Origin: Selaginella moellendorffii | Lineage: Eukaryota; Plantae; Lycopodiophyta | Direction of reading: 5' to 3' | Length of the DNA: 34,486 nucleotides | NCBI RefSeq assembly: GCF_000143415.4 | Contig: NW_003314424.1 | Coordinates: forward strand, 1-34,486 | Part shown: positions 2,076 to 34,093 of the stretch, piece after piece | Layout: the number at the start of each line of letters is the position of its first letter | Numbering within the stretch: position 1 is the stretch's first letter | Translations under genes and position numbers: made by a program | The notes under the pieces: generated by a model | What the model was told of the DNA's origin: nothing | Seen by the model: the letters and a program-made list of their open reading frames with translations, nothing else | The model's database searches: none

Positions 2076-2157
2076 CCCTAAACGCCTAAACGCGCCTAAA
2101 CCCTAAACCCTAAACCCTAAAACCCTAAACTAAAACCCTAAACCCTAAACCCTAAAC
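2076..2157. repeat. Internal telomeric tract (CCCTAAA)n, about 11 units, same polarity as the terminal array
   Basis: CCCTAAA CGCCTAAA CGCGCCTAAA CCCTAAA... lies directly between the LINE 3' end and the truncated Gypsy RT. Confidence 0.95.
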
Positions 2158-4627
2158 TGGTGCTCCGGTCTTGCTTGTGAAGAAGAAGGACGGTTCAATG
2201 CGAATGTGTATTGACTACCGCACTTTGAACAAGAAGACAATGAAGGATAAGATGCCGATGCCACATGTGGATGATATCCTAGACAAGCTTGGTGAAGCAT
2301 AAGTGTTTACCAAGATTGATCTGAGGAGGGGATATCATCAGATTGCAATGGATGATGCATCTATCTCCAAGACGGCATTCAACACAAGCTTCGGACATTT
2401 TGAGTTTGCAATTATGCCGTTTGGTTTGACAAATGCACTGGCCACATTTACTCGGTTGATGACGGAGGTATTTGGGCGTTATCTTCATGAGTTTGTGGAG
2501 ATTTTCTTGGACGTCTTGTTTTTAGCAAGAATATGGAGGAGCATAAGGTGCATTTGTGCAAGGTTCTTTTGAGACAGCAAACTTTATGCAAAGAAGAGCA
2601 AATGTGAATTTGCAAAGTCGGAGGTGGAATATCTAGGCCATATTGTGACATCTCAGGGTGTCAAGACAGATCCAAGGAAGGTGGCTGTGGAAAACTAGCC
2701 TACACCGACTACAGTGGCCGAGTTGCGCAATTTTCTTGGTATGGCTAGTTACTACCGACGTTTCCAACTTAAGTTTGTAGAGGTGGCTATTCCTTTGACG
2801 CAGTTGTTACGCAAGAATGTGCCATTCGAGTGGAAGAAGCCACAAGAGGAGAGTTTTGTGGTGCTGAAACAATTGTTGAGCGAGACTCCAGTGCTTTGCA
2901 TTGCTGATCCATCAAAACCTTACGAGGTGACATGCAATGCGAGTGGTTATGCACTGGGAGGAGTTCTCATGCAAGAGGGACAGCCTATTGCATATGAGAG
3001 TCAAACTTTGAATTCTGCGGAGCAACACTATTCCACATATGAGCAAAAGTTACTCTCTATTGTTCATGCTTTGCGGACGTGGTGGCACTATCTTTATGGT
3101 GCAATGTTCGTGGTGTTGACAGATCACAAACCACTTGTGTATCTGTTCACACAGAAGGAGTTGAACACTAGGCAAGCTCGTTGGATGGTCAAACTCATGG
3201 AGTTTGGGGAGTTTCCTATTGAGCATCTTCCGGGAAAATTAAATGTGGTGGCATATGCTTTATCTCGTGTTTGTCATGTGACGACGTTACGAACACGATT
3301 TTGTCATCATTTGAGTAAGGTGGTCAGCGAGTTTGGGTAGTTGGTTGAGCATGCTTAGGCTCAGGATGCTGAGGTGGCCTCTTTGCAAGACCAGATGGAA
3401 GCCCCTTTCTCATTGGTGGATGGGATTCATTACTACAATGGCCGTGTATATTTGCCATGGGTGGATGCGTTAATTACTCAAGTTTTATTCCACTATCATG
3501 ATCGTCTAGAGGCCGGTCATTTTGGGGGGAAAAAGACGTATGAGTTGATTAAGCGCAACTTTTATTGGAGGAATATGAAGGCTGATATCCTCAAGTATTA
3601 TAAATCATGTGAGCTTTGTCAGCGGGTTAAGGTGCCACGGGAGAAGCCAGAGGGACTTTTGCAACCTTTACCTATTCCTCAGAGCCGTTGGTGTAGTATC
3701 TTTATGGACTTCATCACTTGTTTGCCACGAACACAGAGGCAAAAGGAGCAGGTATGGGTCATAGTGGATCGGTTGACGAAGTATGTGCGGTTGTTGGCTC
3801 TTCGGAAGACTGTCACTGCCTCAGACTTGGCTGCGGTTTACTTGGAGAAGGTTTTTCCTGATTTTGGTTTGCTGGAGGACATCATTAATGATCGAGATTC
3901 AAAGTTCACCAGTGGATTTTGGAAAAGCTTTGCAAAAGCTATGCAAGTGACTTTTAAACTCTCGAGTGGAGATCATCCTCAGACAAATGGGCAAACCGAG
4001 TGGGTGAATCAGGTGGTGGAGGATATGCTACGTTGTAGCATTGGTCAAAGGCAAGGACAGTGGGATCTATATCTTCTGTTGGTGCAATTTGCTTACAACA
4101 ATAGCCAACACAATGGAACCAAGCTAAGTCCTTATTTTGCCATGTTTGGAAGGCATCCTCGAACAACGGTGGAGTTGGGTTTGCATTTGAGTAAGGACGT
4201 TCAAGATAAGCTTGATTCCGAGGTGACTGATTTGGCCACAGAACTTGATGAGATTTTGGTGGTGTGCAAACGGAATTTACAAGCAGCTCAGGATAGAGCG
4301 GAGAAGTTTGCCAATGAGCATCGCCAATTCCGGGAATATAAGGTGGGTGATCTCATCTTTGTGCGTGTGATCTTTCCGTCAAGTGAGCGGCGGAACACCT
4401 TAGTGCCTTTACGGACAGGGAAGAGTGATAAACTTTCCCATCGATATGCTGGTCCATATGAAGTGCTGGAGTGCATTGGTAATGCAGCTTATCAAGTGCG
4501 GCTGCCAGCTGGGGTGAAAATTCATCCGGTATTTTATGTCAGCCAGTTGAAAGGCGTACTATCTCGGAGTGACGGGCCCAATGCCTCCTTGATGTATACG
4601 GCTGTGGAAGATGGACCAGGAGCTTGA
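2158..4627 (+). pseudogene. Ty3/Gypsy pol (RT-RNaseH-integrase) of element A, 5'-truncated at the telomeric tract, with stops and frameshifts
   Basis: Motifs in Gypsy order: [46 protein letters not shown] (RT); VTCNASGYALGGVLMQ, TDHKPL (RNaseH); H..GHFG..C..C, MDFIT, DRDSKFTS, HPQTNGQTE, GPY..HPVF (integrase with GPY/F). Confidence 0.95.
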
Positions 4628-4688
4628 GTAGGGTTCCCCAGAAAGGGTGATCACCGGTACAAGTCGTCCTTGGGACAAGGACTTTGTT

Positions 4689-4934
4689 GGGGGGGAAGAA
4701 TTGTTAGGCATCAGCTTTGACTATGTGGTCAACGTTAGTCAAAGGGAGGCTCAAGGGTATATTAAGGCATGTTAGGGTAAGGGACTTAACCTACCCTAGA
4801 GCTCACAATGGAGCGGCGGCACAGTGGAGCTTTTGAGGTAGCTCGGGGGTGGTTGGGTGGTGAGGAACCTCAAGAGGTGGCGTAGCATAATCTAGGGCGA
4901 CTAGATCTCTGTCTTTTTGTGCTGGATCATAACA
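4689..4934 (+). mobile_element. Polypurine tract (4689-4700) and 3' LTR (4702-4934) of Gypsy element A
   Basis: GGGGGGGAAGAA is followed by a 233-bp TGTTA...TAACA unit. The same unit recurs at 23781-24013 and inverted at 31898-32130. Confidence 0.85.
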
Positions 4935-5014
4935 CAAGCCCACTCCTAGGACCTTCTGATGCCAACACTAGTGGTGATATACTTCAGCACCAATAAAAGT
5001 GGGACTAAGGTACA

Positions 5015-5026
5015 GCTCCGATACCA
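5015..5026 (-). other. Primer-binding site (tRNA-Met type) of LTR element B
   Basis: The minus strand reads TGGTATCGGAGC, 3 nt after an LTR end (...TTTACA). This matches the canonical plant TGGTATCAGAGC with one change. Confidence 0.85.
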
Positions 5027-5029
5027 AAT

Positions 5030-6490
5030 TGTAAACGACTAAAGTTTCCATTCTACTTTCGTCACTTAACCACACCTTTGACCCCTTGGAGGAGTCTCAT
5101 TCACAACCTCCTTAAGTCCAATTTAGGACTTGGGACTTGCTAGTCCCAAGAATGGCATCCATGCCACTCATCCCTTGCACTTGGTCCAAGTGCTCCACGT
5201 GTCCAATCCCAAGACTGACACCCAAAGGTACCACTGACATATTGGCCCATTACACTAAGGCCATGCCCATTCACCTTTGCCACACTGGTGGTCCAATACG
5301 ACTTGCATCACAATCCCGTCTCTCCAAGACTGAGCTATCTGTCCACGAGTGGTCATCCTATATCCACTCCTTAGCATCCTTAGGATGCCCACAGAAATGG
5401 GGAATAGCCTTCCCCAACATCCCTTTGTCAGTTCCTGCCAAGTCCCTTTTCTGTCCATGGCCATGTTCACCAATATTGCTACTAGATCAAGGCCCGCAGG
5501 CCCGGCCACTAAGTCCCATTGTCCTCTGGGACTTCCTCACCATGTGACCATATCCGTAGTCACTACACTAGAGGACTTCTCCTCCTCCTTTCCCCCATTT
5601 GGGACTTCGGGACAACATTTCGGAACACCGTGGCCCTACGCGAGCCCCGTGGGTACTCTCCCCACCTTTCGCCTTTAGGTGCTCTAGCCATGGGCTTAGA
5701 GCGAGGTTCCGTTGAGCCACACCAGGTATCCAAGTAGGTAGTGCCACCCACACTTGGACTGGGAGCATCAGCCAGTCGATCTCCCGGGGGAACTAGAGCC
5801 GGCTCTTGAACACTTCACCAAGCTACCCCGCTTGTCGGTTCGTATTCACTCTAGTCTTGGACTTCCCAGTGGTCAGTTCATCACCCAACACTGGGTCTGG
5901 CCTTCCTGGGCCAAATTGGCCTTTCCTGGCCAAATTGGCTCCATTGCAGTCCTCCCCCTCACTATACTTTTGGAGCTCACCAAACCCCCCAGGGTCTGGG
6001 AGACGAACGCTTTGGGCTTTCACCCTCTTAGACTCGAACTCGGACTTGGACTCAGACTCAGACTCGGCCTCGGCCGCGGTCTCGGTCCCGGTCTCGGTCC
6101 CGGTCTCAGTCCTGGTCTCAGTCTCGGTCCCGGTCTCCTCGGTCTCGGTCTCGGTCTTGGTCTCAGTCCCGGTCTCTCCATCTCGGACTCCATCTCGGAC
6201 TCCACCTCGGACTCCAACTTGGGTCCATCTCAGACTCCAACTTGGGTCCATCTCGGACACTTCCACGTGTCATGCGTTGGTCCTTTTGGGTCCCTTTTTT
6301 GGAGCCTCGCTTATTGCTCGCTTCATGCTCGTTCCTTGAGCACTCTGTTGGGAGTTCCATTCCCGCTCTCAACCTTTCAAGTCAAAGCCTTTTAGTCCAA
6401 ACGTGTTACGCTTGTTTGGCTTTTGCTTCGGCCACTACCACGTGGCACCCTTTCGGCTCCACTTTGGGGCTTAGGGATTTGCGTCTCAGA
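5030..6490 (-). mobile_element. 5' LTR (about 1.46 kb) of LTR retrotransposon family B, containing GGTCTC and GGACTCCATCTC minisatellites
   Basis: The ends are TGTAA...TCTCA(G/C)A with an adjacent PBS. It is homologous to the TSD-flanked solo LTR at 16643-21362. Gypsy A is inserted about 90 bp into its leader, in the opposite orientation. Confidence 0.85.
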
Positions 6491-6499
6491 CTGTGGTGT

Positions 6500-7360
6500 C
6501 ATCATTTCACCCTTTTGCTCCTCTCTATGGAACCTTCATTTCTACCATCTCTTGGTTTATTTATTGTGTGACACTTTGTTTTCTTGCTTTGTATGGAGGT
6601 TTTTGTCCCTAGCTCGTCCATGCATTATTGCTTGCAACCTTGCTCCAAAGTTCACATCTAACCCTCTTCTGTGGTGGTTCATCATCATCTTCTTCTTCTT
6701 TTCATGATGAGGAAGGACTCTTGTCTTGAATTTCATCACTTGTCACTTTTTGTCTCACTATTACCCTCTTCATTATCATTGTGTTGTACCTTGTCTTCAT
6801 CGTCCTCACACTCCTAATCATTTGACGTTGATGTTAATGAGGATGTATCGCTTAATGTATGTTTATCATCAACAACCTGATCGACATTATGTCTATCATT
6901 TGGATTGTAGTTGGAGAGGTCATGGAATGGATGCTCCAATTCTTCTATTTCCCTCTGATAAAAAAGTCTCTCAATTAGAATCCTATTGTTGACTATCCAC
7001 AACAACAATGCCGGTTAGTTTGTCCTTGAGGATTCCATAAGCAGTGAAGGTTGTATCAATTCCTTCTCTACAGACTGTATTGTAATTGATGGAACCCTAA
7101 ACTCTGAGTCTTGAACAATATTCCTGATGAATGTCTTTTGAAGCTCTGTATAAATGGCCTTCCTTCCCTATTCATGTCTTTGTTAGGAATCTCCTCTTCT
7201 TTGATGACAATCCCATAGACTATTGGACTGTTTGGGTTGGTAAGATCCACCAACACTAGATCATCATCTTGTATCTCTAACGTCCACTTTTGTGGTTGTG
7301 TGGAGTTGCAGCCTCTTTCACTCTGATGGACTCATGTAGAAGTGTTTTAGATTGCTGGGC
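6500..7360 (-). pseudogene. Highly degenerate unidentified coding relic with an acidic low-complexity tract; possibly a DNA-transposon accessory ORF
   Basis: The minus strand is purine-rich with D/E-rich pieces (EDDEDK, KEEEDDDEPPQKRVR) and LVDLTNPNSPIVYGIVI, but has many stops. Mirror at about 29460-30320. Confidence 0.3.
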
Positions 7361-7426
7361 CTAGAAACATGAAAGAACTTATTAGAATTACTTAAAATAT
7401 TTTTGAAATGGGAGAGAATGGATCCT

Positions 7427-8010
7427 AGTGTGAGGCCTCATGCTAAGTGAAAGGGGTAATGGAAGTAATTCTATAGCAGGTTAATAGCATGAGGACTCAA
7501 GAATGGATAGGGTGTATGAAAGGGGTAGTGGAGGTAATTCTATAGGAGGTTATTAGCATAAGGCCTCACACTTAAGAATGGATGGGGTGTGTTTGCCAAT
7601 TCCTTGATAATAATATTACTTGTCCCATGGACAGATGTTCAAGCAAGATTACCATCAAGAAACTAGACAAACCAAAATCTTTTTAGCACTTTAGCATAAG
7701 GCCTCATGCTAATCCTTAAGCATGAGTCCAGTCACAATGTGTTGATGGAGATTACTAGCATGAGGCCTCACACTTAGATTGCTTGTGATATTTTTCCTAG
7801 TTTCTTGATGACAATCTTATTCACTTATGCAATAAACATGCATGCAAAGGAGATTGGTGTCGAGAAACTAGGCTAGAGGAGGTGGGTGGGCTTTTTTTCA
7901 TGGTGTGAGGCCTCACACTAATGTTTTTGTGTGAGGTTGGACACCATCCAGATTGGATTAAGGTATTATGGAGGGATGAAGTCATTTTCTTGGCATGAGG
8001 CCTCATGCTA
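7427..8010. repeat. Cluster of about 7 dispersed 18-bp palindromes, consensus AGYRTRAGGCCTCAYRCT
   Basis: Copies at about 7427, 7486 (partial), 7556, 7693, 7757, 7903 and 7993, with irregular spacers. Confidence 0.85.
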
Positions 8011-8643
8011 TTCATTTATATACATTTGTTTCTTACTACTTTAGGTGTCTAGGTGAGTAATCTTACTCGCCAATTCATCGTTGGGGTAAATGTTCAAACA
8101 ATATTGCTCCCCAAACACTTGCAAGACTGGGGAAACAATGGAAGGTTGTACGTTTAGATGCTTGTTTAGCCATTGCCATATTTGTAGTGTCATTTTTATT
8201 TCACTTTAAGTTCACAAGTTACACACTTTATTTCTATTCCTATCTATAGTGCCTAAGGAAACTGTTTGAAGGCAGCTATGTCGTGAATGTGACTTCGGGT
8301 ATCGAAAGTTACCTGTCGACCAGTCCTTACAGACACTCTTACCTTACTGCCACGACGGCAGGAGGTCCGTATTGCTGGACCCTTTATCAGTCACTCTTGT
8401 GCTAGTGGAGTTAACTGGGCATTTCGAGTGTACTTAGACCGGACGAGCATAAGGACGGAATTCCTACGTGTTATTAGCTAAGCATACTTAGCCCGGTAAG
8501 GAGTTCCCGTCTCGTTATGTCTTGCCCTGGCTAGTGACAAGAACCCTCGCGTATTGAGATTGGTCCCTCAATATCGCTACATGATAGCTTACCGTGTCTG
8601 CCAAACACCCTCGCTATCATGCCCTTTGTGCTAGTCTCATTTC

Positions 8644-8917
8644 AGCACACGCAAGCAGTGTTTGACTCCATGGAGCGACACGATTGCCACTTGTGGGTCA
8701 TTATGTTCTTGGCACACGCCCAAGAAGGGCATCTCGCCACTACCAAGGATCGAGGCAAGGTTACTGCTGCATGGTGGATTTCTTGGGGCGAGCTGGGTGT
8801 GTGGAAGAGGCCGAGGAACTTGTGAGGAGTATGCCTTACAAGCCAGTTTCAGTGGATTGGATGTGCTTGCTGGGAGCAAAGTTTTGTGCTAGAACAAGCT
8901 TTAAGTGTAGATTCTAG
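8644..8917 (+). pseudogene. PLS/E-class PPR gene remnant, 5' part deleted in this arm
   Basis: QAVFDSMERHD..W.IM..AHAQEGHL and YCCMVDFLGRAGCVEEAEELVRSMPYKPVSVDWMCLLGA lie in different frames. Confidence 0.85.
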
Positions 8918-9119
8918 GAATTCTACTAGCAAATAGTAGCAATTTTGTTTGAAACTAGTGTGAGTGTAGATTCTGTGTCCTCGTGATTAAAGAGGGTATT
9001 CTTTGACAGATCATCATGTATGATTAAAGAGAAAATTCTTTGCTCATTTCCAATGGTCGAGTACAAGAGCCAGCTTTTGGACTATATAAATTTAGGGTTC
9101 TTGGAGGTTAGTGGCGCAG

Positions 9120-10429
9120 TGATGGCACAGGGCTGCGCAGCAATCTCCAGTGCAGGCGGCCATGGCAGGAGCTCAGCGGCTCGCTGGGCGACCTGGGCAC
9201 ATTCATCCCAATCGTCATGGCTGTAGCTCTCGTCAATGGCATGGATCTTGGTCTCTCATCACCACGAGCATCTACAACGTTCTCACCAGCGTGCTCTTTG
9301 GCGTGCCAATGCCTGTCCAGCCCATGAAATCCATCACAGCGGTGGCCTTCACCGAATCCAAGCATCTCAGTGTGGATGAGATCATGGCCGCGGGGATCAG
9401 TGTGTCTGCGATCGTGTTTGTGCTTGGAAGCACGGGCTTGATCACAGGTCGTGGCTTGGATCGTGCCATTGCCGGTGGTTCGTGGCATCCAGCTTGCACA
9501 TGGGCTCTTTTGCAGTCAAGGCTGTCAAGTACGTGATGAAGGATCAAAATCTCTCTAGGGACAAGGCAATGGGTGATCGACCATGGCTGGGCTTGGATGG
9601 AATTCTCCTCGCAGTGATTTGCTTCGCATTCATCGTGCTAGTGAATGGATCCGGCGAGGGCTACGAGTACTTCGTGACGAACAGTGAAGGTGATCGTCAT
9701 CACGATGATCATGAAGAGCACCGTGAAGAACATCAAGCGAGATCGTCAAAGCTCGTGAAGTTTTTCCAGAGGATCCTGACTGCCTTAGCAGTGTTCGTGC
9801 TCGGGATCATCCTGGTGTTCGTGAGGAGGCCACACATTCTCAAGGAGCTCCAGTTTGGCCCAGCCACGCCACGGATCACTAGAATCTCTTCCCACGACTG
9901 AAAGATGGTTTGTGAGAGCCACAATCCCACAGCTCCCTCTCACTATCCTCAACTCGGTGGTGGCGGTTTGCAAGCTCTCGAGCGATCTCTTCCCGGCCAA
10001 GAAGGACGCCGTGACTCCGACCAAAGTCTCGGTGAGCGTGGGGCTCATGAACTTGGTGGGCTGCTGGTTTGGAGCTCTCCTGGTTTGCCATGGCGCTGGA
10101 GGACTGGCCGGGCAGTATCGTTTCGGAGCCACGAGTGGGGTAGCGGTGGCAAGCTTGTGCTGGGGCTTCTCTTGGGAGGCTCACTGGTGAGAATTCTGCC
10201 AGCATTTCCAGTGGGACTGCTGGGGATCTTGCTGCTCTTCTCCGGGGTGGAGCTGGCGATGGCATGCCCGGATTGAACTAGTAGGAGGGACTTGTTTGTG
10301 ATGCTCTGCTGCATTGCCATCTCGCAGGGATCCAATCTCGCGGTGGGATGTGTTTGTGCCATACTCTTGTATGTGCTGCTCCAGGCGAGAGAGATGGATT
10401 GTTGGGTGGTTGCAAGCTTTTGGTTGTGA
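9120..10429 (+). pseudogene. Molybdate transporter (MOT1/MOT2, former SULTR5 family) pseudogene, intronless and frameshifted
   Basis: Hallmark motifs ELSGSLGDLGTFIPIV, FGVPMPVQPMKSI, IPQLPLTILNSVVAVCKLSSDLFP, SVGLMNLVGCWFGA..VCHGAGGLAGQYRFG and FPVGLLGILLLFSGVELAMA are spread over several frames, with an in-frame stop. Confidence 0.92.
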
Positions 10430-10896
10430 GGTTCCTCAATGTAAATAAAGCTTTGAAAAGTTTGGGAGAACATCATGGTAACACACTTGCCTGAAACCAC
10501 ATCCATGCCATCTTCTCAAAAGCCTGCGAGGCCTGGCTACAACCACCGTTAGCGGCATATGAAGCCAGGGATGTTATCTGCAACAAAGACGGTGCAGAGT
10601 AAGTGGGGCTTCATCGAGGTCTTCATGTCGAAATTGATTCAGAGTGTAAATTTTAAAACTATGTACTTTTCACTCAAGAGTAAAATGGATTCCATTCCTC
10701 ACCGTGTGGAATGAGAGCAATTCGGCCCGGCCTAGCAAACGAGAGAGTGAAACATTGGAGGGATGTGCGCTTCTATATCCCAACCTTTTCCACGAGTCCC
10801 GCCTTGTCGTAGCACTTGGCTTGGCTCAGGCCTGTATAGCAGGTATAATTTTGGGGTGCCGCTGTGCTCTTTGAACTTTGGGTAACGCTTTACCAT

Positions 10897-11781
10897 TCCA
10901 TCTCGGGTCCATCTCAGACTCCATCTCGGGTCCATCTCAAACTCCATCTCAGTCCATCTCGGACTCCATTTCAGGTCCATTTTGGATTTCATCTTGGACT
11001 CCATTTCAGACTCCATCTTGGGTCCATCTCGGACTCCATTTTGGTCCCTCTCAGACTCCACCACGTGTCATGTAATGGTCCTTTTGTGTCCTTTTTCTAG
11101 AGACTCTTTTATTGCTCGCTTCATGCTCATTCCTTGAGCACTCCGAAAGGAGTTCCACTCTCGCTCTCGACTCTTCAAGCCGGAGCTTTTAGTCCAAATA
11201 TATTACGCTCATTTAGCTTTCACTTTGGCCACTACTACGTGGCACCCTTTCGGCTCTACTTTGGGGTTTAGGGATTTATGTCTCACACTATACTTTTGCA
11301 ACTTACCAAACCCCCTAGGGTCTAGGATATGATTGTGTTGGCCTTTCACCCTTGGACTTAGACTTGGACTCGAACTCAGACTCGGACTCGGGCCCGGTCT
11401 TGGCTCTAGTCTCAGTCTTGGTCTCAGTCTCGGTCCTCATCTTAGATTCCTTCCTAGACTCTTCAAACTCCATCTTGAACTCCATCTCAGACTCCTCGGA
11501 TTCTATCTTGGACTCCTTCTTGGACTCCATCTCAGATTCCTTTTTAGACTGGATCTCAACACTTCCATGTGTTAGTCCTTCTTGTGTCCCTTTTTAGAGA
11601 CTCATTCACTGATTGTTTCATGTTCATTCCTTAAGCATTTTTTTCAGAGTTTCATTCCTGCTCTCAACTTTCCAAGTCAAAGATTTTAGTCCAAACATGT
11701 TATGTTTGTTGGACTTCTTCAACCACTACCATATAGCACTCTTTTGGCTCTATTTTGGGGCTTAGAAATTCATGTCTCACA
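10897..11781 (-). mobile_element. Two tandem partial, more diverged copies of the family-B LTR (10897-11287, 11288-11781)
   Basis: Both end in TCTCACA on +, and both carry the GGACTCCATCTC minisatellite and the CCACTAC..CGTGGCACCC-like block. Confidence 0.8.
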
Positions 11782-11994
11782 ATCTCGTGATGCTGGCATT
11801 TTCTTGTTTTCTTTGGCAAATCCTAAAGAGATTAATTTTTTTTCAAAGATCATTTATTTGAAGTAGCAATTCATGTTGATGTTGATGTTGAGATTTCTTC
11901 ATCCACTATTTCTTGTAGTGGAGCTTGACTAAGTGGGCCTTAAAAGTCAAAGCCCTTAACAATTGCCCCACAAAAGCATTTATGTAAGCTCTTA

Positions 11995-12841
11995 AGATTG
12001 AGTTTGGACTTCTCAAGAGGTCACCCAAAATGGAATTGCTAAATGTCAATCAACATATGGTGCGATTCCTCTCGCCAACCAATAGAGTCAAACTTGAGAC
12101 CCTCTCTAATACCAAATGTAAACTTATAAGGTTGGACTTCCCGAAATGTCACCCAACCCAATACTATTTAAACCCAAGGACACTTAACCCCAAGTATTTC
12201 AATACCCTTAACTTACTTTTATTCATAGGTTTTTTTCCTTTATATTTAAATCCCATATAAGCAACCAAAAGGAACAATTTGAAAGATAATCTATAGGGTT
12301 CAAATATAGAAGGAAAATGTTTATGAATAAGAGTACACCCCCTTTTCTAATCGGTTAAAGGTCTTGAAATATTTGGGGTTAAATGTCCTTCGGTTTAAAT
12401 AATACTATATTAAATGACCTCTCGGGAAGTCCAAATTCAAGAACTTACATTTGGTATTAAAGAGGGTCTCCAATCTGACTTTGTTGGTTGGGTAAGGGAA
12501 TTGCATCACATGTTAATTGACATTTGGCAGATCCACTTTGCTCCGACTGAGCTTGACCCGAGGGGTAGGGTGTCAAGAGAGCAGGGCTCTCAGGAGAGTT
12601 ATGGCTCTCAACTTTTATTCACAAGGGTATGAACTTGCAAGAAAGCATATTGGATTATAAGCAACCAAAGGGAACAACTTGAGAAATGATCCATAGGGTT
12701 CAAATATAAAGGGAAAGGGACTATGAATAAGAGTGCACTTCCTTTTCCAATCGGTTAAAGGTTTTGGGATATTTGGGGTTAAGTATCTTTAGATTTGAAT
12801 AATACTGAGTTGGGTGACCTCTTAGGAAATTTAAATTCAAG
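11995..12841. repeat. AT-rich foldback element with long imperfect inverted repeats (MULE/MITE-like)
   Basis: About 12037-12210 is the imperfect reverse complement of about 12355-12529. About 12255-12440 is directly repeated at about 12655-12840. The outer ends (about 11997-12027 and 12810-12841) are also inverted. Confidence 0.7.
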
Positions 12842-12959
12842 TTGTTGTCCTCAAGTTGTTCTCTTTAATTCTTTACAATTTTTTATCACTATACTAATTG
12901 TGAATGTTTTCCCCTATCCTTCACATTGGTTTGTAAGAAAAGCTCTAGTCCTTCACTAG

Positions 12960-22640: not shown

Positions 22641-22762
22641 CACTCTAGTGAAGGACTAGAGCTTTTCTTACAAACCAATGTGAAGGATAGGGGAAAACAT
22701 TCACAATTAGTATAGTGATAAAAAATTGTAAAGAATTAAAGAGAACAACTTGAGGACAACAA

Positions 22763-23609
22763 CTTGAATTTAAATTTCCTAAGAGGTCACCCAACTCAGT
22801 ATTATTCAAATCTAAAGATACTTAACCCCAAATATCCCAAAACCTTTAACCGATTGGAAAAGGAAGTGCACTCTTATTCATAGTCCCTTTCCCTTTATAT
22901 TTGAACCCTATGGATCATTTCTCAAGTTGTTCCCTTTGGTTGCTTATAATCCAATATGCTTTCTTGCAAGTTCATACCCTTGTGAATAAAAGTTGAGAGC
23001 CATAACTCTCCTGAGAGCCCTGCTCTCTTGACACCCTACCCCTCGGGTCAAGCTCAGTCGGAGCAAAGTGGATCTGCCAAATGTCAATTAACATGTGATG
23101 CAATTCCCTTACCCAACCAACAAAGTCAGATTGGAGACCCTCTTTAATACCAAATGTAAGTTCTTGAATTTGGACTTCCCGAGAGGTCATTTAATATAGT
23201 ATTATTTAAACCGAAGGACATTTAACCCCAAATATTTCAAGACCTTTAACCGATTAGAAAAGGGGGTGTACTCTTATTCATAAACATTTTCCTTCTATAT
23301 TTGAACCCTATAGATTATCTTTCAAATTGTTCCTTTTGGTTGCTTATATGGGATTTAAATATAAAGGAAAAAAACCTATGAATAAAAGTAAGTTAAGGGT
23401 ATTGAAATACTTGGGGTTAAGTGTCCTTGGGTTTAAATAGTATTGGGTTGGGTGACATTTCGGGAAGTCCAACCTTATAAGTTTACATTTGGTATTAGAG
23501 AGGGTCTCAAGTTTGACTCTATTGGTTGGCGAGAGGAATCGCACCATATGTTGATTGACATTTAGCAATTCCATTTTGGGTGACCTCTTGAGAAGTCCAA
23601 ACTCAATCT
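22763..23609. repeat. Mirror copy of the foldback element
   Basis: Reverse complement of 11995-12841. Confidence 0.7.
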
Positions 23610-23682
23610 TAAGAGCTTACATAAATGCTTTTGTGGGGCAATTGTTAAGGGCTTTGACTTTTAAGGCCCACTTAGTCAAGCT

Positions 23683-24013
23683 GTGGAAGATGGACCAGGA
23701 GCTTGAAGAGGATTCCCCAGAAAGGGTGATCACCGATACAACTCGTCCTTGGGACAAGGACTTTGTTGGGGGGGAAGAATTGTTAGGCGCCAGCTTTGAC
23801 CTCGTGGTCAACATCGGTCAAAGGGAGGCTCAAGGGTATATTAAGGCATGTTAGGGTAAGGGACTTAACCTACCCTAGGGCTCACAGTGGAGCGGCGGCG
23901 CAGTGGAGCTTTTGAGGTAGCTCGGGGGTGGTTGGGTGGTGAGGAACCTCAAGAGGTGGCGTAGTATAGTCTTGGGCAACTAGATCTTTGTTTTTTTGCG
24001 CCGGATCATAACA
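23683..24013 (+). mobile_element. 3' end of a third Gypsy-A copy (about 100 bp internal, PPT, LTR 23781-24013), right arm only
   Basis: Homologous to 4604-4934 with its own variants. It occupies the place of left-arm 11610-11921. Confidence 0.9.
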
Positions 24014-24822
24014 ATGAATGAGTCTCTAAAAAGGGACACAAGAAGGACTAACACATGGAAGTGTTGAGATCCAGTCTAAAAAGGAATCTGAGATGGAGTC
24101 CAAGAAGGAGTCCAAGATAGAATCCGAGGAGTCTGAGATGGAGTTCAAGATGGAGTTTGAAGAGTCTAGGAAGGAATCTAAGATGGGGACCGAGACTGAG
24201 ACCAAGACTGAGACTAGAGCCAAGACCGGGCCCGAGTCCGAGTCTGAGTTCGAGTCCAAGTCTAAGTCCAAGGGTGAAAGGCCAACACAATCATATCCTA
24301 GACCCTAGGGGGTTTGGTAAGTTGCAAAAGTATAGTGTGAGACATAAATCCCTAAACCCCAAAGTAGAGCCGAAAGGGTGCCACGTAGTAGTGGCCAAAG
24401 TGAAAGCTAAATGAGCGTAATATATTTGGACTAAAAGCTCCGGCTTGAAGAGTNNNNNNNNNNNNNNNNNNNNNNNNNNNNNNNNNNNNNNNNNNNNNNN
24501 NNNNNNNNNNNNNNNNNNNNNNNNNNNNNNNNNNNNNNNNNNNNNNNNNNNNNACTCCTATCGGAGTGCTCAAGGAACGAGCATGAAGCGAGCAATAAAA
24601 GAGTCTCTAGAAAAAGGACACAAAAGGACCATTACATGACACATGGTGGAGTCTGAGAGGGACCGAAATGGAGTCCGAGATGGACCCAAGATGGAGTCTG
24701 AAATGGAGTCCAAGATGGAATCCGAAATGGACCTGAAATGGAGTTCGAGATGGACTGAGATGGAGTTTGAGATGGAGTTTGAGATGGACCCGAGATGGAG
24801 TCTGAGATGGACCCGAGATGGA
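24014..24822 (+). mobile_element. Mirror of the partial family-B LTRs (spans the assembly gap)
   Basis: Reverse complement of 10897-11609, with SNPs and a 12-bp unit indel. Confidence 0.8.
24454..24553. other. Assembly gap (100 N)
   Basis: Run of N. Its flanks mirror 11170 and 11153, so the other arm has only 16 bp here. Confidence 1.
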
Positions 24823-25289
24823 ATGGTAAAGCGTTACCCAAAGTTCAAAGAGCACAGCGGCACCCCAAAATTATACCTGCTATACAGGCCTGAGCCAAGC
24901 CAAGTGCTACGACAAGGCGGGACTCGTGGAAAAGGTTGGGATATAGAATCGCACATCCCTCCAATGTTTCACTCTCTCGTTTGCTAGGCCGGGCCGAATT
25001 GCTCTCACTCCACACGGTGAGGAATGGAATCCATTTTACTCTTGAGTGAAAAGTACATAGTTTTAAAATTTACACTCTGAATCAATTTCGACATGAAGAC
25101 CTCGATGAAGCCCCACTTACTCTGCACCGTCTTTGTTGCAGATAACATCCCTGGCTTCATATGCCGCTAACGGTGGTTGTAGCCAGGCCTCGCAGGCTTT
25201 TGAGAAGATGGCATGGATGTGGTTTCAGGCAAGTGTGTTACCATGATGTTCTTCCAAACTTTTCAAAGCTTTATTTACATTGAGGAACC

Positions 25290-26599
25290 TCACAACCAAA
25301 AGCTTGCAACCACCCAACAATCCATCTCTCTCGCCTGGAGCAGCACATACAAGAGTATGGCACAAACACATCCCACCGCGAGATTGGATCCCTGCGAGAT
25401 GGCAATGCAGCAGAGCATCACAAACAAGTCCCTCCTACTAGTTCAATCCGGGCATGCCATCGCCAGCTCCACCCCGGAGAAGAGCAGCAAGATCCCCAGC
25501 AGTCCCACTGGAAAAGCTGGCAGAATTCTCACCAGTGAGCCTCCCAAGAGAAGCCCCAGCACAAGCTTGCCACCGCTACCCCACTCGTGGCTCCGAAACG
25601 ATACTGCCCGGCCAGTTCTCCAGCGCCATGGCAAACCAGGAGAGCTCCAAACCAGCAGCCCACCAAGTTCATGAGCCCCACGCTCACCGAGACTTTGGTC
25701 GGAGTCACGGCATCCTTCTTGGCCGGGAAGAGATCGCTCGAGAGCTTGCAAACCGCCACCACCGAGTTGAGGATAGTGAGAGGGAGCTGTGGGATTGTGG
25801 CTCTCACAAACCATCTTTCAGTCGTGGGAAGAGATTCTAGTGATCTGTGGCATGGCCGGGCCAAACTGGAGCTCCTTGAGAATGTGTGGCCTCCTCACGA
25901 ACACCAGGATGATCCCGAGCACGAACACTGCTAAGGCAGTCGGGATCCTCTGGAAAAACTTCACGAGCTTTGACGATCTCGCTTGATGTTCTTCACGGTG
26001 CTCTTCATGATCATCGTGATGACGATCACCTTCACTGTTCGTCACGAAGTACTCGTAGCCCTCGCCGGATCCATTCACTAGCACGATGAATGCGAAGCAA
26101 ATCACTGCGAGGAGAATTCCATCCAAGCCCAGCCATGGTCGATCACCCATTGCCTTGTCCCTAGAGAGATTTTGATCCTTCATCACGTACTTGACAGCCT
26201 TGACTGCAAAAGAGCCCATGTGCAAGCTGGATGCCACGAACCACCGGCAATGGCACGATCCAAGCCACGACCTGTGATCAAGCCCGTGCTTCCAAGCACA
26301 AACACGATCGCAGACACACTGATCCCCGCGGCCATGATCTCATCCACACTGAGATGCTTGGATTCGGTGAAGGCCACCGCTGTGATGGATTTCATGGGCT
26401 GGACAGGCATTGGCACGCCAAAGAGCACGCTGGTGAGAACGTTGTAGATGCTCGTGGTGATGAGAGACCAAGATCCATGCCATTGACGAGAGCTACAGCC
26501 ATGACGATTGGGATGAATGTGCCCAGGTCGCAAAGCGAGCCGCTGAGCTCCTGCCATGGCCGCCTGCACTGGAGATTGCTGCACAGCCCTGTGCCATCA
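25290..26599 (-). pseudogene. Molybdate transporter (MOT1 family) pseudogene, second copy
   Basis: Mirror of 9120-10429 (sum 35719), with the same frameshifts and a few private SNPs. Confidence 0.92.
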
Positions 26600-26801
26600 C
26601 TGCGCCACTAACCTCCAAGAACCCTAAATTTATATAGTCCAAAAGCTGGCTCTTGTACTCGACCATTGGAAATGAGCAAAGAATTTTCTCTTTAATCATA
26701 CATGATGATCTGTCAAAGAATACCCTCTTTAATCACGAGGACACAGAATCTACACTCACACTAGTTTCAAACAAAATTGCTACTATTTGCTAGTAGAATT
26801 C

Positions 26802-27243
26802 CTAGAATCTACACTTAAAGCTTGTTCTAGCACAAAACTTTGCTCCCAGCAAGCACATCCAATCCACTGAAACTGGCTTGTAAGGCATACTCCTCACAAG
26901 TTCCTCGGCCTCTTCCACACACCCAGCTCGCCCCAAGAAATCCACCATGCAGCAGTAACCTTGCCTCGATCCTTGGTAGTGGCGAGATGCCCTTCTTGGG
27001 CGTGTGCCAAGAACATAATGACCCACAAGTGGCAATCGTGTCGCTCCATGGAGTCAAACACTGCTTGCGTGTGCTGATCTTGCCCAGCTTGCCATACCGA
27101 AGGATGACGAGATTGGAGAGGTAGCAGCAATCGCCAGGCAGCATTTGCTTCTGGGCGATCTCGATCCGGGAATGGGCATCAATTGCCTGCGTGGAATTGG
27201 TCGCGGAAGTGATGAGATCCACACACTCGGACTTGGACAGCAT
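26802..27243 (-). pseudogene. PLS/E-class PPR pseudogene with retained N-terminus and large internal deletion
   Basis: MLSKSECVDLI...YLSNLVILRYGKLGKI, then a frameshift to AVFDSMERHD...AQEGHL, then directly YCCMVDFLGRAG...MPYKP..W.CLLGA. Confidence 0.85.
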
Positions 27244-27392
27244 TAGTTTCTCTCGACACCGAAGCTAGCCTCTCATGAGATTAGAGAGAAGGGAGAGATT
27301 AGGGAAATTCTCGATGGCATCCTTCCAAAGTAGCCCCTAGCTTGGTTTGTTCATTCTAGTGAGCCAATGCATTGCAAAGAGCTTTTCCTAGC

Positions 27393-28570
27393 TGTAGCGT
27401 ACGTGGTTTTGACCCTTTATCCTATGGTGATTTACCATAGGATAACACCACGAAGCGGAACCTAAACCCTCTTTGTGCCACGTGACAGATGCCACGTGTC
27501 ACATACCACGTGTCCATGCCACGTGTCCATAGGAACCCGAGGTTCAGGGCCTTGGGCCACTGAACGAAGGAACGGTGCCAAACTCCCAAGCGTGACGCCA
27601 AGGAGTGATGGAACTGGACCACGGAGCAACTCCCGAGCATATAGCCCAAGGAGCGAAGGGACAGGAGCCCAGAGCGACTTGGAACAGTCCTGGAGCAACC
27701 AGCATCCCAATGCCAGGACCGGCACGCAAAACGGAGCCAAACGGAGTCTGGCGCTATTTCGGCATACCGGTGGCCTAACGTGAGGATATGGGTACTCCAC
27801 CAGCTAGCATGGAATGGAACTTGGGCTTAGACCCAAGCCGGACGCAGGACAAGGACAGGCACGCAAGCGGGAGCTAGACTATGCCTCAGGTTGGTCGGCC
27901 ATGCCCGACCTACCCACTATCCCTACTATACATTTGGAACCCCCCATAGCCCCCCCCCCCCCTTGAGGAACACACGCTTTGGGCTTTCACCCCAAGCCTC
28001 CCTTAGTATCAGGAGTTAGTCTCTGGGACAAGCTCGAAACCTACTAAATATGGAATGTCCCTAGATTGTGAATTTGGACACGGGACGAACACCATTGTGT
28101 TCAGGCCAACCTCTACATTCCGTAGATATGCCAAATGAGCAAATCTGGACACTTTCCATAATTAGCATTTGGGACCGAAATGAGACTAACACAAAGGGCA
28201 TGATAGCGAGGGTGTTTGGCAAACACGGTAAGCTATCATGTAGCGATATTGAGGGACCAATCTCAATACGCGAGGGTTCTTGTCACTAGCCAGTGCAAGA
28301 CATAACGAGACGGGAACTCCTTACCGGGCTAAGTATGCTTAGCTAATAACACGTAGGAATTCCGTCCTTATGCTCGTCCGGTCTAAGTACACTCGAAATG
28401 CCCAGTTAACTCCACTAGCACAAGAGGGACTGATAAAGGGTCCAGCAATACGGACCTCCTGCCATCGTGGCAGTAAGGTAAGAGTGTCTGTAAGGACTGG
28501 TCGACAGGTAACTTTCGATACCCAAAGTCACATTCGCGACATAGCTGCCTTCAAACAGTTTCCTTAGGCA
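27393..28570. mobile_element. GC-rich LTR-like repeat with G-box cluster, poly-C run and hairpins; only the distal part (about 8250-8643) remains in the left arm
   Basis: Four CACGTG within about 27478-27527, a poly-C run at about 27950, and a compositional break from the AT-rich flank. Termini are uncertain. Confidence 0.45.
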
Positions 28571-28809
28571 CTATAGATAGGAATAGAAATAAAGTGTGTA
28601 ACTTGTGAACTTAAAGTGAAATAAAAATGACACTACAAATATGGCAATGGCTAAACAAGCATCTAAATGTACAACCTTCCACTATTTCCCCAGTCTTGCA
28701 AGTGTTTGGGGAGCAATATTGTTTGAACATTTACCCCAAAGATGAATTGGTGAGTAAGATTACTCACCTAGACACCTAAAGTAGTAAGAAACAAATGTAT
28801 ATAAATGAA

Positions 28810-29393
28810 TAGCATGAGGCCTCATGCCAAGAAAATGACTTCATCCCTCCATAATACCTTAATCCAATCTGGATGGTGTCCAACCTCACACAAAAACATT
28901 AGTGTGAGGCCTCACACCATGAAAAAAAGCCCACCCACCTCCTCTAGCCTAGTTTCTCGACACCAATCTCCTTTGCATGCATGTTTATTGCATAAGTGAA
29001 TAAGATTGTCATCAAGAAACTAGGAAAAATATCACAAGCAATCTAAGTGTGAGGCCTCATGCTAGTAATCTCCATCAACACATTGTGACTGGACTCATGC
29101 TTAAGGATTAGCATGAGGCCTTATGCTAAAGTGCTAAAAAGATTTTGGTTTGTCTAGTTTCTTGATGGTAATCTTGCTTGAACATCTGTCCATGGGACAA
29201 GTAATATTATTATCAAGGAATTGGCAAACACACCCCATCCATTCTTAAGTGTGAGGCCTTATGCTAATAACCTCCTATAGAATTACCTCCACTACCCCTT
29301 TCATACACCCTATCCATTCTTGAGTCCTCATGCTATTAACCTGCTATAGAATTACTTCCATTACCCCTTTCACTTAGCATGAGGCCTCACACT
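28810..29393. repeat. Mirror copy of the AGGCCT-centred palindrome cluster
   Basis: Reverse complement of 7427-8010 (sum 36820). Confidence 0.85.
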
Positions 29394-30329
29394 AGGATCC
29401 ATTCTCTCCCATTTCAAAAATATTTTAAGTAATTCTAATAAGTTCTTTCATGTTTCTAGGCCCAGCAATCTAAAACACTTCTACATGAGTCCATCAGAGT
29501 GAAAGAGGCTGCAACTCCACACAACCACAAAAGTGGACGTTAGAGATACAAGATGATGATCTAGTGTTGGTGGATCTTACCAACCCAAACAGTCCAATAG
29601 TCTATGGGATTGTCATCAAAGAAGAGGAGATTCCTAACAAAGACATGAATAGGGAAGGAAGGCCATTTATACAGAGCTTCAAAAGACATTCATCAGGAAT
29701 ATTGTTCAAGACTCAGAGTTTAGGGTTCCATCAATTACAATACAGTCTGTAGAGAAGGAATTGATACAACCTTCACTGCTTATGGAATCCTCAAGGACAA
29801 ACTAACCGGCATTGTTGTTGTGGATAGTCAACAATAGGATTCTAATTGAGAGACTTTTTTATCAGAGGGAAATAGAAGAATTGGAGCATCCATTCCATGA
29901 CCTCTCCAACTACAATCCAAATGATAGACATAATGTCGATCAGGTTGTTGATGATAAACATACATTAAGCGATACATCCTCATTAACATCAACGTCAAAT
30001 GATTAGGAGTGTGAGGACGATGAAGACAAGGTACAACACAATGATAATGAAGAGGGTAATAGTGAGACAAAAAGTGACAAGTGATGAAATTCAAGACAAG
30101 AGTCCTTCCTCATCATGAAAAGAAGAAGAAGATGATGATGAACCACCACAGAAGAGGGTTAGATGTGAACTTTGGAGCAAGGTTGCAAGCAATAATGCAT
30201 GGACAAGCTAGGGACAAAAACCTCCATACAAAGCAAGAAAACAAAGTGTCACACAATAAATAAACCAAGAGATGGTAGAAATGAAGGTTCCATAGAGAGG
30301 AGCAAAAGGGTGAAATGATGACACCACAG

Positions 30330-31816
30330 TCTGAGACGCAAATCCCTAAGCCCCAAAGTGGAGCCGAAAGGGTGCCACGTGGTAGTGGCCGAAGCAAAAG
30401 CCAAACAAGCGTAACACGTTTGGACTAAAAGGCTTTGACTTGAAAGGTTGAGAGCGGGAATGGAACTCCCAACAGAGTGCTCAAGGAACGAGCATGAAGC
30501 GAGCAATAAGCGAGGCTCCAAAAAAGGGACCCAAAAGGACCAACGCATGACACGTGGAAGTGTCCAAGATGGAGTCCGAGATGGACCCAAGTTGGAGTCT
30601 GAGATGGACCCAAGTTGGAGTCCGAGGTGGAGTCCGAGATGGAGTTCGAGATGGAGAGACCGGGATTGAGACCAAGACCGAGACCGAGACCGAGGAGACC
30701 GGGACCGAGACTGAGACCGGGACTGAGACCGGGACCGAGACCGGGACCGAGACCGCGGCCGAGGCCGAGTCCGAGTCTGAGTCCAAGTCCGAGTTCGAGT
30801 CTAAGAGGGTGAAAGCCCAAAGCGTTCGTCTCCCAGACCCTGGGGGGTTTGGTGAGCTCCAAAAGTATAGTGAGGGGGAGGACTGCAATGGAGCCAATTT
30901 GGCCAGGAAAGGCCAATTTGGCCCAGGAAGGCCAGACCCAGTGTTGGGTGATGAACTGACCACTGGGAAGTCCAAGACTAGAGTGAATACGAACCGACAA
31001 GCGGGGTAACTTGGTGAAGTGTTCAAGAGCCGGCTCTAGTTCCCCTGGGAGATCGACTAGCCGATGCTCCCAATCCAAGTGTGGGTGGCACTACCTACTT
31101 GGATACCTGGTGTGGCTCAACGGAACCTCGCTCTAAGCCCATGGCTAGAGCACCTAAAGGCGAAAGGTGGGGAGAGTACCCACGGAGCTCGCGTAGGGCC
31201 ACGGTGTTCCGAAATGTTGTCCCGAAGTCCCAAATGGGGGAAAGGAGGAGGAGAAGTCCTCTAGTGTAGTGACTACGGATATGGTCACATGGTGAGGAAG
31301 TCCCAGAGGACAATGGGACTTAGTGGCCGGGCCTACGGGCCTTGATCTAGTGGCAATATTTGTGAACATGGCCATGGACAGAAAAGGGACTTGGCAGGAA
31401 CTGACAAAGGGATGTTGGGGAAGGCTATTCCCCATTTCTGTGGGCATCTTAAGGATTCTAAGGAGTGGATATAGGATGACCACTCGTGGACGGATAGCTC
31501 AGTCTTGGAGAGACGGGATTGTGATGCAAGTCGTATTGGACCACCAGTGTGGCAAAGGTGAATGGGCATGGCCTTAGTGTAATGGGCCAATATGTCAGTG
31601 GTACCTTTGGGTGTCGGTCTTGGGATTGGACACGTGGAGCACTTGGACCAAGTGCAAGGGATGAGTGGCATGGATGCCATTCTCGGGACTAGCAAGTCCC
31701 AAGTCCTAAATTGGACTTAAGGAGGTTGTGAATGAGACTCCTCCAAGAGGTCAGAGATGTGGTTAAGTGACGAAAGTAGAATGGAAACTTTAGTCGTTTA
31801 CAATTTGGTATCGGAG
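30330..31816 (+). mobile_element. Family-B 5' LTR (30330-31802) and PBS (31806-31816)
   Basis: ...TTTACA ATT TGGTATCGGAG; mirror of 5015-6490. Confidence 0.85.
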
Positions 31817-31897
31817 TTGTTCCTTAGTCCCACTTTTATTGGTGCTGAAGTATATCACCACTAGTGTTGGCATCGGAAGGTCCTAGGAGTGGGCTTG

Positions 31898-34093
31898 TGT
31901 TATGATCCAGCGCAAAAAGACAGAGATCTAGTTGCCCTAGACTATGCTACGCCACCTCTTGAGGTTCCTCACCACCCAACCACCCCCGAGCTACCTCAAA
32001 AGCTCCACTGTGCCGCCGCTCCACTGTGAGCTCTAGGGTAGGTTAAGTCCCTTACCCTAACATGCCTTAATATACCCTTGAGCCTCCCTTTGACTAACGT
32101 TGACCACATAGTCAAAGCTGGTGCCTAACAATTCTTCCCCCCCAACAAAGTCCTTGTCCCAAGGACGACTTATACCGGTGATCACCCTTTCTGGGGAACC
32201 CTACTCAAGCTCCTGGTCCATCTTCCACAGCCGTATACATCAAGGAGGCATTGGGCCCGTCACTCCGAGATAGTATGCCTTTCAACTGGCTGACATAAAA
32301 TACCGGATGAATTTTCACCCCAGCTGGCAGCCGCACTTGATAAGCTGCATTACCAATGCGCTCCAGCACTTCATATGGACCAGCATATCGATGGGAAAGT
32401 TTATCACTCTTCCCTGTCCGTAAAGGCACCAAGGTGTTCCGCCGCTCACTTGACGGAAAGATCACGCGCACAAAGACGAGATCACCCACCTTATATTCCC
32501 GGAATTGGCGATGCTCATTGGCAAACTTCTCTGCTCTATCCTGAGCTGCTTGTAAATTCCATTTGCACACCACCAAAATCTCATCAAGTTCTGTGGCCAA
32601 ATCAGTCGCCTCGGAATCAAGCTTATCTTGAACGTCCTTACTCAAATGCAAACCCAACTCCACCGTTGTTCGAGGATACCTTCCAAACATGGCAAAGTAA
32701 GGACTTAGCTTGGTTCCATTGTGTTGGCTATTATTGTAAGCAAATTGCACCAACGGAAGATATAGATCCCACTGTCCTTGCCTTTGACCAATGCTACAAC
32801 GTAGCATATCCTCCACCACCTGATTCACCCACTCGGTTTGCCCATTTGTCTGAGGATGATCTCCACTCGAGAGTTTAAAAGTCACTTGCATAGCTTTTGC
32901 AAAGCTTTTCCAAAATCCACTGGTGAACTTTGAATCTCGATCATTAATGATGTCCTCCAGCAAACCAAAATCAGGAAAAACCTTCTCCAAGTAAACCGCA
33001 GCCAAGTCTAAGGCAGTGATAGTCTTCCGAAGAGCCAACAACCGCACATACTTCGTCAACCGATCCACTATGACCCATACCTGCTCCTTTTGCCTCTGTG
33101 TTCGTGGCAAACAAGTGATGAAGTCCATAAAGATACTACACCAACGGATCTGAGGAATAGGTAAAGGTTGCAAAAGTCCCCCCGGCTTCTCCCGTGGCAC
33201 CTTAACCCACTGACAAAGCTCACATGATTTACAATACTTGAGGATATCAGCCTTAATATTCCTCCAATAAAAGTTGCGCTTAATCAACTCATACGTCTTT
33301 TTCCCCCCAAAATGACCGGCCTCTAGACGATCATGATAGTGGAATAAAACTTGAGTAATTAACGCATCCACCCATGGCAAATATACACGGCCATTGTAGT
33401 AATGAATCCCATCCACCAATGAGAAAGGGGCTTCCATCTGGTCTCGCAAAGAGGCCACCTCAGCATCCTGAGCCTGAGCATGCTCAACCAACTACCCAAA
33501 CTTGCTGACCACCTTACTCAAATGATGACAAAATCGTGTTCGTAACGTCGTCACATGACAAACACGAGATAAAGCATATGCCACCACATTTGATTTTCCC
33601 GGACGATGCTCAATAGGAAACTCCCCAAACTCCATGAGTTTGACCATCCAACGAGCTTGCCTAGTGTTCAACTCCTTCTGTGTGAACAGATACACAAGTG
33701 GTTTGTGATCTGTCAACACCACGAACATTGCACCATAAAGATAGTGCCACCACGTCCGCAAAGCATGAACAATAGAGAGTAACTTTTGCTCATATGTGGA
33801 ATAGTGTTGCTCCGCAGAATTCAAAGTTTGACTCTCATATGCAATAGGCTATCCCTCTTGCATGAGAACTCCTCCCAGTGCATAACCACTCGCATCGCAT
33901 GTCACCTCGTAAGGTTTTGATGGATCAGCAATGCAAAGCACTGGAGTCTCGCTCAACAATTGTTTCAGCGCCACAAAACTCTCCTCTTGTGGCTTCTTCC
34001 ACTCGAATGGCACATTCTTGCGTAACAACCGCGTCAAAGGAATAGCCACCTCTGCAAACTTATGCTGGAAACGTCGGTAGTAACTAGCCATAC
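31898..34093 (-). mobile_element. Gypsy element A mirror copy (LTR 31898-32130; integrase and RNaseH 32205-34093), interrupted at the TIR
   Basis: Mirror of 2739-4934 (sum 36832), including a 428-aa integrase ORF. Confidence 0.95.

Follow-up and report, generated by a model that had tools for sequence, protein, structure and literature searches.

How did two inverted copies of one segment come to lie behind telomere repeats at a scaffold end of the lycophyte Selaginella moellendorffii? The stretch that raises this question, called the window below, is made up of positions 1–34,486 of contig NW_003314424.1 in assembly GCF_000143415.4, read on the forward strand (34,486 nucleotides, nt). It holds a palindrome whose two long arms flank a single-copy spacer, and on the distal side the left arm runs into a tract of CCCTAAA, the plant-type telomere repeat. 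Reading the letters, we think it probable, if well short of assured, that the locus records a genuine rearrangement of a known kind: inverted duplication, terminal deletion and healing by telomere addition. What is new here is an example of that rearrangement made wholly of transposon debris, in a draft assembly of two haplotypes.

Two inverted arms around a single-copy spacer

The limits of the palindrome were set by comparing the window with itself and by aligning the two arms globally (see the table). The self-comparison, a dot-plot check proposed in an earlier note on this DNA, recovers both inverted arms and the single-copy spacer, and the sizes estimated in that note (arms of about 12.8 and 14 kb, a spacer of 4.6 kb) agree with the measured 12,781, 13,997 and 4,581 nt. 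By self-comparison and by alignment the inverted homology is far above chance. Of 12,454 bases aligned between the arms, 101 are substituted; there are several indels besides, and the arms are two inverted copies of one contiguous segment. Self-comparison of the window finds one fold-back junction and two copies of the segment. Between the copies the spacer is of kilobase scale, and its part at 15518–16642 is without a second copy in the window. From its outer to its inner end, the left arm contains the RNase H and integrase of a retroelement, Gypsy-A (2699–4624), the 3′ long terminal repeat (LTR) X1 of that element (~5033–6492), nested LTR debris, a second element, Gypsy C, in reverse from its RNase H onward, and then the last 1.27 kb of a solo LTR, X2 (14242–15517). 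Scans for Rfam families and tRNAs returned no matches.

The ancestral direction of the locus can be read from X2, which straddles the boundary between the spacer and the right arm. This LTR is inserted in the pol region of Gypsy C and is flanked by a target-site duplication (TSD), CTTTC. On its 5′ side, 16364–16624 aligns to residues 46–123 of a reference gypsy pol (E = 1e-13); beyond it, 21374–21496 aligns to residues 131–167 of the same reference (E = 1e-6) and is also the start of the Pfam domain RT_RNaseH_2. Because pol is colinear across the TSD-flanked LTR, the spacer and the right arm are, on this sequence evidence, one unbroken and uninterrupted ancestral stretch; the spacer is thus ancestrally continuous with the right arm. 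Of X2, the left arm holds just the final 1.27 kb; it breaks off 740 nt within the LTR, with no homology further on, and at 15517 it passes directly into unrelated Gypsy C sequence with no inserted bases at the junction. The earlier note had described the old Gypsy C and its solo LTR as continuous, the right side as ancestral and the left arm as beginning mid-LTR at 15517; the colinear pol, the CTTTC duplication and the position 740 nt inside X2 bear this out. The part of Gypsy C upstream of the spacer does not occur in the window, an absence that bears, within that scope, on the loss of DNA distal to the spacer. Insertion of a transposon was considered as the origin of the central junction and was ruled out, as the left arm ends inside the LTR and not at a TG/CA terminus.

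X2 reaches 4.7 kb by means of five repeats of an internal unit of ~600–716 bp, apparently arranged as two double units and one. Four of the five units lie in the spacer, three have identical 604-nt starts, and one unit edge lies 6 nt from the fold-back junction. Every unit ends in a (TCCATCTCGGAC)n minisatellite, which related LTRs also carry (6063–6258, 10897–11060, 24647–24822 and 30562–30793).

At the distal side, the left arm continues into the reverse transcriptase (RT) of Gypsy-A, which starts mid-domain at 2158 and leads through RNase H and integrase to X1. Pfam identifies RVT_1, RT_RNaseH and integrase domains in this element, and in a protein search the integrase is at best 59% identical to its match, a plant Ty3/gypsy element. 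Directly distal to the truncated RT lies the inner telomere tract, which is perfect where it abuts the RT and degenerate distally; the distal copy of the duplication therefore ends in telomere repeats set on non-telomeric DNA. The earlier note had placed the end of the left arm at this junction, mid-RT at 2157/2158. The RT is indeed cut there by the tract, whereas homology to the right arm within the window stops before it, at 2737/34095. The right arm ends at 34095 because a transposon end, recognizable by a conserved 24-nt terminus, is inserted at that point, and for this reason the outermost 579 bases on the left-arm side, which reach 2157/2158, are left without a partner in the window. The left-arm RT reads unbroken through the point that matches the interruption. 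Very probably the right arm resumes past the inserted transposon, beyond the window. Position 34095 as an edge of the duplication was ruled out, since it coincides with the transposon terminus.

Two elements separate the inner tract from the terminal telomere array. Next to the tract is a long interspersed nuclear element (LINE), truncated at its 5′ end, whose 3′ end faces the tract; the repeats that it meets first are degenerate (GACCCTAAACGCCTAAACGCGCCTAAACCC). Such a polarity would suit reverse transcription with a telomeric G-overhang as primer. Because the LINE is joined by its 3′ end, in that polarity, to the distal side of the tract, the tract would once have been terminal, and we read it as a former chromosome terminus with the healing site at 2157/2158. 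Folding of the LINE 3′ end gave no significant structure (z = −0.4). The capping tract is now internal, as distal to it lie ~1.8 kb of transposon and LINE sequence and then the second array, presumed to be the end of both the scaffold and the chromosome.

The remaining distal element is Z1, whose distal side is cut by the terminal array. Its 24-nt terminus, TCCCACTTTAACGAAATAGAGCTT, is the same as that of Z2, the transposon end inserted in the right-arm Gypsy-A, and the two stretches are otherwise unrelated; Z1 resembles the right end, and Z2 the left end, of a single family of transposons with terminal inverted repeats (TIRs). The truncation of Z1 may be either a second healed break or the mark of a telomere tract belonging to the transposon, and in the latter case 1–267 would not necessarily be a true chromosome end. 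Telomere-like motifs of two units with one mismatch, CCCTAAACCCCAAA and CCCTAAACTCTAAA, also occur inside the arms, in the pairs 11260–11273 / 24350–24363 and 13251–13264 / 22340–22353. They are probably due to chance or internal to transposons.

Table. Features of the window and blocks of arm divergence (left-arm coordinates; mismatches / length, divergence), in order of position
Feature	Position	Length (nt)	Strand	Remarks
Terminal telomere array	1–267		+	~38 CCCTAAA copies, C-strand reading inward
Z1, right-end fragment of TIR-type transposon	268–781	514	+	Ends in 24-nt terminus TCCCACTTTAACGAAATAGAGCTT at 758–781
5′-truncated LINE fragment	782–2075		+	zf-RVT (PF13966) at 1188–1433, E = 1.1e-7
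Inner telomere tract (CCCTAAA)	2076–2157		+	Orientation as at 1–267
Gypsy-A RT part	2158–2736	579	+	Continuous with left arm, unpaired in window
Left (distal) arm	2737–15517	12,781	+	From self-comparison, arm alignment and Pfam
Divergence block, left arm	2738–6254			63 / 3,517, 1.79%
Divergence block, left arm	6255–8068			1 / 1,814, 0.06%
Divergence block, left arm	8069–8641			12 / 573, 2.09%
Divergence block, left arm	8642–11153			20 / 2,512, 0.80%
Divergence block, left arm	11170–11611			2 / 442, 0.45%
Divergence block, left arm	11922–15517			3 / 3,596, 0.08%
Single-copy spacer	15518–20098	4,581	+	Gypsy C RT remnant and 5′ part of solo LTR X2
Gypsy C RT remnant in spacer	15518–16642
Solo LTR X2 (TG...CA), in Gypsy C pol	16643–21362		+	TSD CTTTC at 16638–16642 and 21363–21367
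Right (proximal) arm, inverted counterpart of 2737–15517	20099–34095	13,997	−	Length includes 100 N
Right-arm-private block	23683–24011	329	+	Replaces 310 nt at left 11612–11921
Assembly gap	24454–24553	100 N		Equals 16 nt of left arm (11154–11169); non-coding LTR
Right-arm-only stretch	27078–28178	1,101		Flanked by 2-nt TC repeat; unique in window, no Pfam match, run of 13 G
Z2, left end of TIR transposon within right-arm Gypsy-A	34094–34486		+	Terminus 34094–34117 (−)

Differences between the arms and their distribution

Are the arms two physical copies, or one sequence read twice? The substitutions between them comprise 85 transitions and 16 transversions, 43 being of the CpG type. The T/A state is split almost evenly, with 42 sites on the left and 43 on the right. 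Where a related LTR and the 329-nt fragment serve as outgroups, 11 derived states fall on the left and 15 on the right. Because derived, transition-biased changes occur on both sides, the arms are separate physical copies of DNA rather than a single read folded back. The divergence, judged by these changes, is biological and not sequencing noise. The earlier note had taken the private single-nucleotide polymorphisms (SNPs) and indels of each arm as a sign of persistence and against a read fold-back. Two distinct copies with derived changes on both agree with the second part of that claim; persistence does not follow, given the patchy divergence and the haplotype-level identity considered below.

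Larger differences accompany the substitutions. Three 12-nt slips in the TCCATCTCGGAC minisatellite distinguish the arms. The 1,101-nt stretch that the left arm lacks, with its 2-nt flanking repeat, probably reflects a deletion by microhomology in the left arm, or else an insertion in the right. Nearer the center, the 329-nt block of the right arm is a 93–94% copy of a Gypsy-A internal region, taken from a relative and not from the local copies. The left arm at the corresponding 310 nt continues the LTR to its normal ...TCTCACA end and flank, so that the right arm is the derived one at this replacement. The flanks of the replacement are near-identical between the arms, and the change looks like a break repaired with filler DNA. 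An artefact in which a read folds back on itself or an adapter is missed was ruled out by the 4.6-kb spacer, the balanced and transition-biased substitutions, the transposon insertion, the 1.1-kb indel and the 310/329-nt replacement.

The divergence is not evenly spread. Across the six blocks listed in the table it is strongly heterogeneous (G = 100.5, p = 4e-20), in a pattern that suits gene conversion and a haplotype mosaic alike. Unequal mutability was ruled out as the cause, as CpG density does not differ between the quiet inner block and the divergent ones. The patchiness fits arm-to-arm gene conversion in an old palindrome. If all the divergence arose after the duplication, 1.8% would correspond roughly to 0.5–1.3 million years, at mutation rates known from other plants. 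The pattern must also be viewed against the makeup of the scaffold, which here consists of two contigs. The first, 1–24453, covers the left arm, crosses the junction and the spacer and extends 4.35 kb into the right arm; the second starts at 24554. The flanks of the gap between them are colinear with the continuous left arm, consistent in order and orientation, and no reading frame is at stake because the gap lies in a non-coding LTR.

A possible history and its alternatives

From the anatomy above we infer an order of events, a mechanism and the placement of all parts on one molecule. The ancestral order, from the centromere side (right) outward, would have been Gypsy-A, nested LTR debris, Gypsy C with its solo LTR X2, and further distal DNA. 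A break at the present 15518 would have removed all distal DNA. The broken end may then have folded back, or sister chromatids may have fused after unequal resection, joining 15518 to the complement of 20099 and leaving 4.6 kb single-copy. The inverted copy would have ended ~13.4 kb out, inside the Gypsy-A RT, by breakage of a dicentric or by stalled synthesis, and telomerase would have added CCCTAAA/TTTAGGG repeats at 2157/2158. Onto this healed telomere a LINE could have been copied by its 3′ end, a transposon could have landed distally, and the present terminal array could have formed. After the duplication, or between haplotypes, would have come the transposon insertion (34095/6), the 1.1-kb indel, the 310/329-nt replacement, the 12-nt slips and the 101 substitutions, mostly of C-to-T type, while the two near-identical blocks would fit conversion from arm to arm. 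The earlier note had seen in this anatomy the inverted-duplication and terminal-deletion signature of breakage-fusion-bridge (BFB) cycles. The anatomy matches that signature, but one junction and two copies do not speak for repeated cycles. The phrase is too strong because a single fold-back or sister fusion with one break suffices, as does aborted synthesis without any bridge. Possible, and in our view rather doubtful, is the fullest form of this history, in which one lycophyte chromosome end would keep the entire chronology of repair (break, fold-back or fusion, second break, healing, LINE, transposon, new telomere) and the palindrome would have persisted to ~2% divergence with partial re-homogenization by gene conversion.

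Several observations weigh against an old, intact palindrome on one molecule. One is the scaffold gap within the right arm: the junction contig differs from the left arm by 0.12% and the contig that follows by 1.14%, about ninefold more (Fisher p = 2e-11), and the step coincides with the gap (2 mismatches in 442 nt on its inner side, 7 in 223 nt on its outer side). The outer arms are 98.5% identical. Papers on the 212.6-Mb S. moellendorffii assembly, which contains both haplotypes, report the same value between these (PMC7801247, PMC3680378); because the two values coincide, differences that appear private to an arm may be allelic. Only 3 bases distinguish the arms over their inner 3.6 kb, below read-level resolution, and the orientation and exact length of the spacer rest on the mate pairs of the assembler. 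The length is also uncertain because the first 604 nt are identical in three of the five tandem LTR units. In either orientation a single fold-back junction remains, and sister-chromatid fusion could yield both. Any microhomology at the junction would be absorbed into the arms of the product and is readable only in unrearranged sequence. An exact look-up of ten open reading frames, one of them spanning 15517/15518, found no match, and the protein search with the Gypsy-A integrase found none from this genome. The contrast between the contigs, the step at the gap and the haplotype-like identity of the outer block would be explained by a young but real fold-back in a scaffold that is a mosaic of haplotypes. 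The junction and the nearly identical inner arms would come from one haplotype, and the outer right arm, meaning the post-gap contig and perhaps everything from the 329-nt block outward, from the other, unrearranged one; mate pairs would have placed it there because its true counterpart had collapsed onto the left arm. On that view the transposon insertion, the 1.1-kb indel and the SNPs would be allelic and uninformative on the age of the palindrome. A contig break only ~16 nt wide resembles a conflict between reads more than a lack of coverage, and large haplotype-specific LTR indels are reported in S. lepidophylla, in line with such a mosaic. However, a quiet block with 1 mismatch in 1,814 nt lies within the second contig, so patchiness is not only an effect of contigs; the 310/329-nt replacement sits between near-identical flanks within the first, marking an arm-specific change on the junction contig too; and heterologies border both quiet blocks, as expected of conversion tracts. 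We regard this mosaic as a serious contender that is nonetheless on the unlikely side.

Could the palindrome be absent from the plant altogether? The arms might be one chromosome end in its two haplotypes, or in two paralogous copies, joined head to head by a chimeric clone or by a wrong path through the LTR units. The gap in one arm and the haplotype-level difference between the arms would accord with such a mis-join, and the spot is difficult for reads of ~800 nt, since the tandem unit with its edge 6 nt from the junction has a 604-nt start that recurs identically three times. Yet the spacer side of the junction, 15518–16642, is unique in the window and has nothing in common with the LTR; no overlap could thus have created the join, and reads carrying the junction must exist. 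A random chimera or a missed-adapter read is also an unlikely source of it because points 4.6 kb apart are joined in inverted orientation with the spacer present, and for a random chimera such a link would be very unlikely. A linearized bubble of two haplotypes would not duplicate 3.6 kb onto the far end of a shared stem, and the 329-nt replacement marks the right-arm part of the junction contig as a second physical copy. For these reasons a mis-join seems to us improbable. Less probable still is a history of two unrelated events, in which replication template switching made an interstitial inverted duplication and a separate, later terminal deletion was healed inside the distal copy. A junction with neither inserted bases nor assessable microhomology does not discriminate between these mechanisms. 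Two rare events within 13 kb would be needed, however, where one known pathway gives exactly this product (PMC3907307), and the ancestral distal flank, Gypsy C upstream of 15518, would be expected beyond the copy and is absent from the window.

Relation to known rearrangements

The inverted duplication, terminal deletion and telomere healing that we favor resemble human inverted duplications with terminal deletion (Hermetz et al., 2014; PMC3907307). All 21 human cases sequenced there have a single-copy spacer of 766–70,466 bp (median 3,428 bp) at the junction, and the distal end is often a new telomere (PMC3907307). The Selaginella locus shares the inverted copies, a kilobase-scale spacer (4,581 bp) continuous with the proximal copy, and telomere repeats on non-telomeric DNA. 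It differs in scale and content, with ~13 kb of transposon debris compared with ~10 kb to tens of megabases in humans, and in age and provenance: the human rearrangements are de novo, whereas this one is old or polymorphic and is read from a draft assembly.

Plants gave the first descriptions of how broken chromosome ends heal after breakage and fusion, mostly from cytology. In McClintock's chromatid BFB cycle of maize, broken sister ends fuse, an inverted duplication results, and a second break can be stabilized by a new telomere. Our locus shows one junction and two copies without stepwise amplification, and it is seen as sequence instead of by cytology; unlike the maize cycle, a fold-back with aborted synthesis would yield the same product without a bridge. 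Large palindromes, such as those of sex chromosomes, have arms kept alike by arm-to-arm gene conversion. The likeness here lies in long inverted arms around a spacer and in blocks of at most 0.1% divergence beside blocks of ~2%, bounded by heterologies. In contrast to those palindromes, no genes are maintained, only transposon remnants, and the patchiness could be haplotype mosaicism. Retroelements attached to telomeres, both endonuclease-less Penelope-like elements and LINEs, are known from chromosome ends. The LINE described above recalls them in that its 3′ end adjoins the distal side of the inner tract in the polarity of G-overhang priming, and differs in being a later addition to the healed end, outside the inverted duplication.

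Among the papers searched, none reports a sequence-resolved natural case from a land plant, and such a scar of a folded-back and healed chromosome end is seldom seen letter by letter in plants. Should the arms prove to be two haplotypes, the locus would serve as a warning on inferring structural history from a two-haplotype Selaginella assembly. If reads confirm the palindrome, it would offer a natural system for measuring arm-to-arm conversion, with both junctions usable in polymerase chain reaction (PCR) surveys across accessions, and the fold-back pathway of human germline rearrangements and of yeast would be seen to shape the chromosome ends of a wild plant as well.

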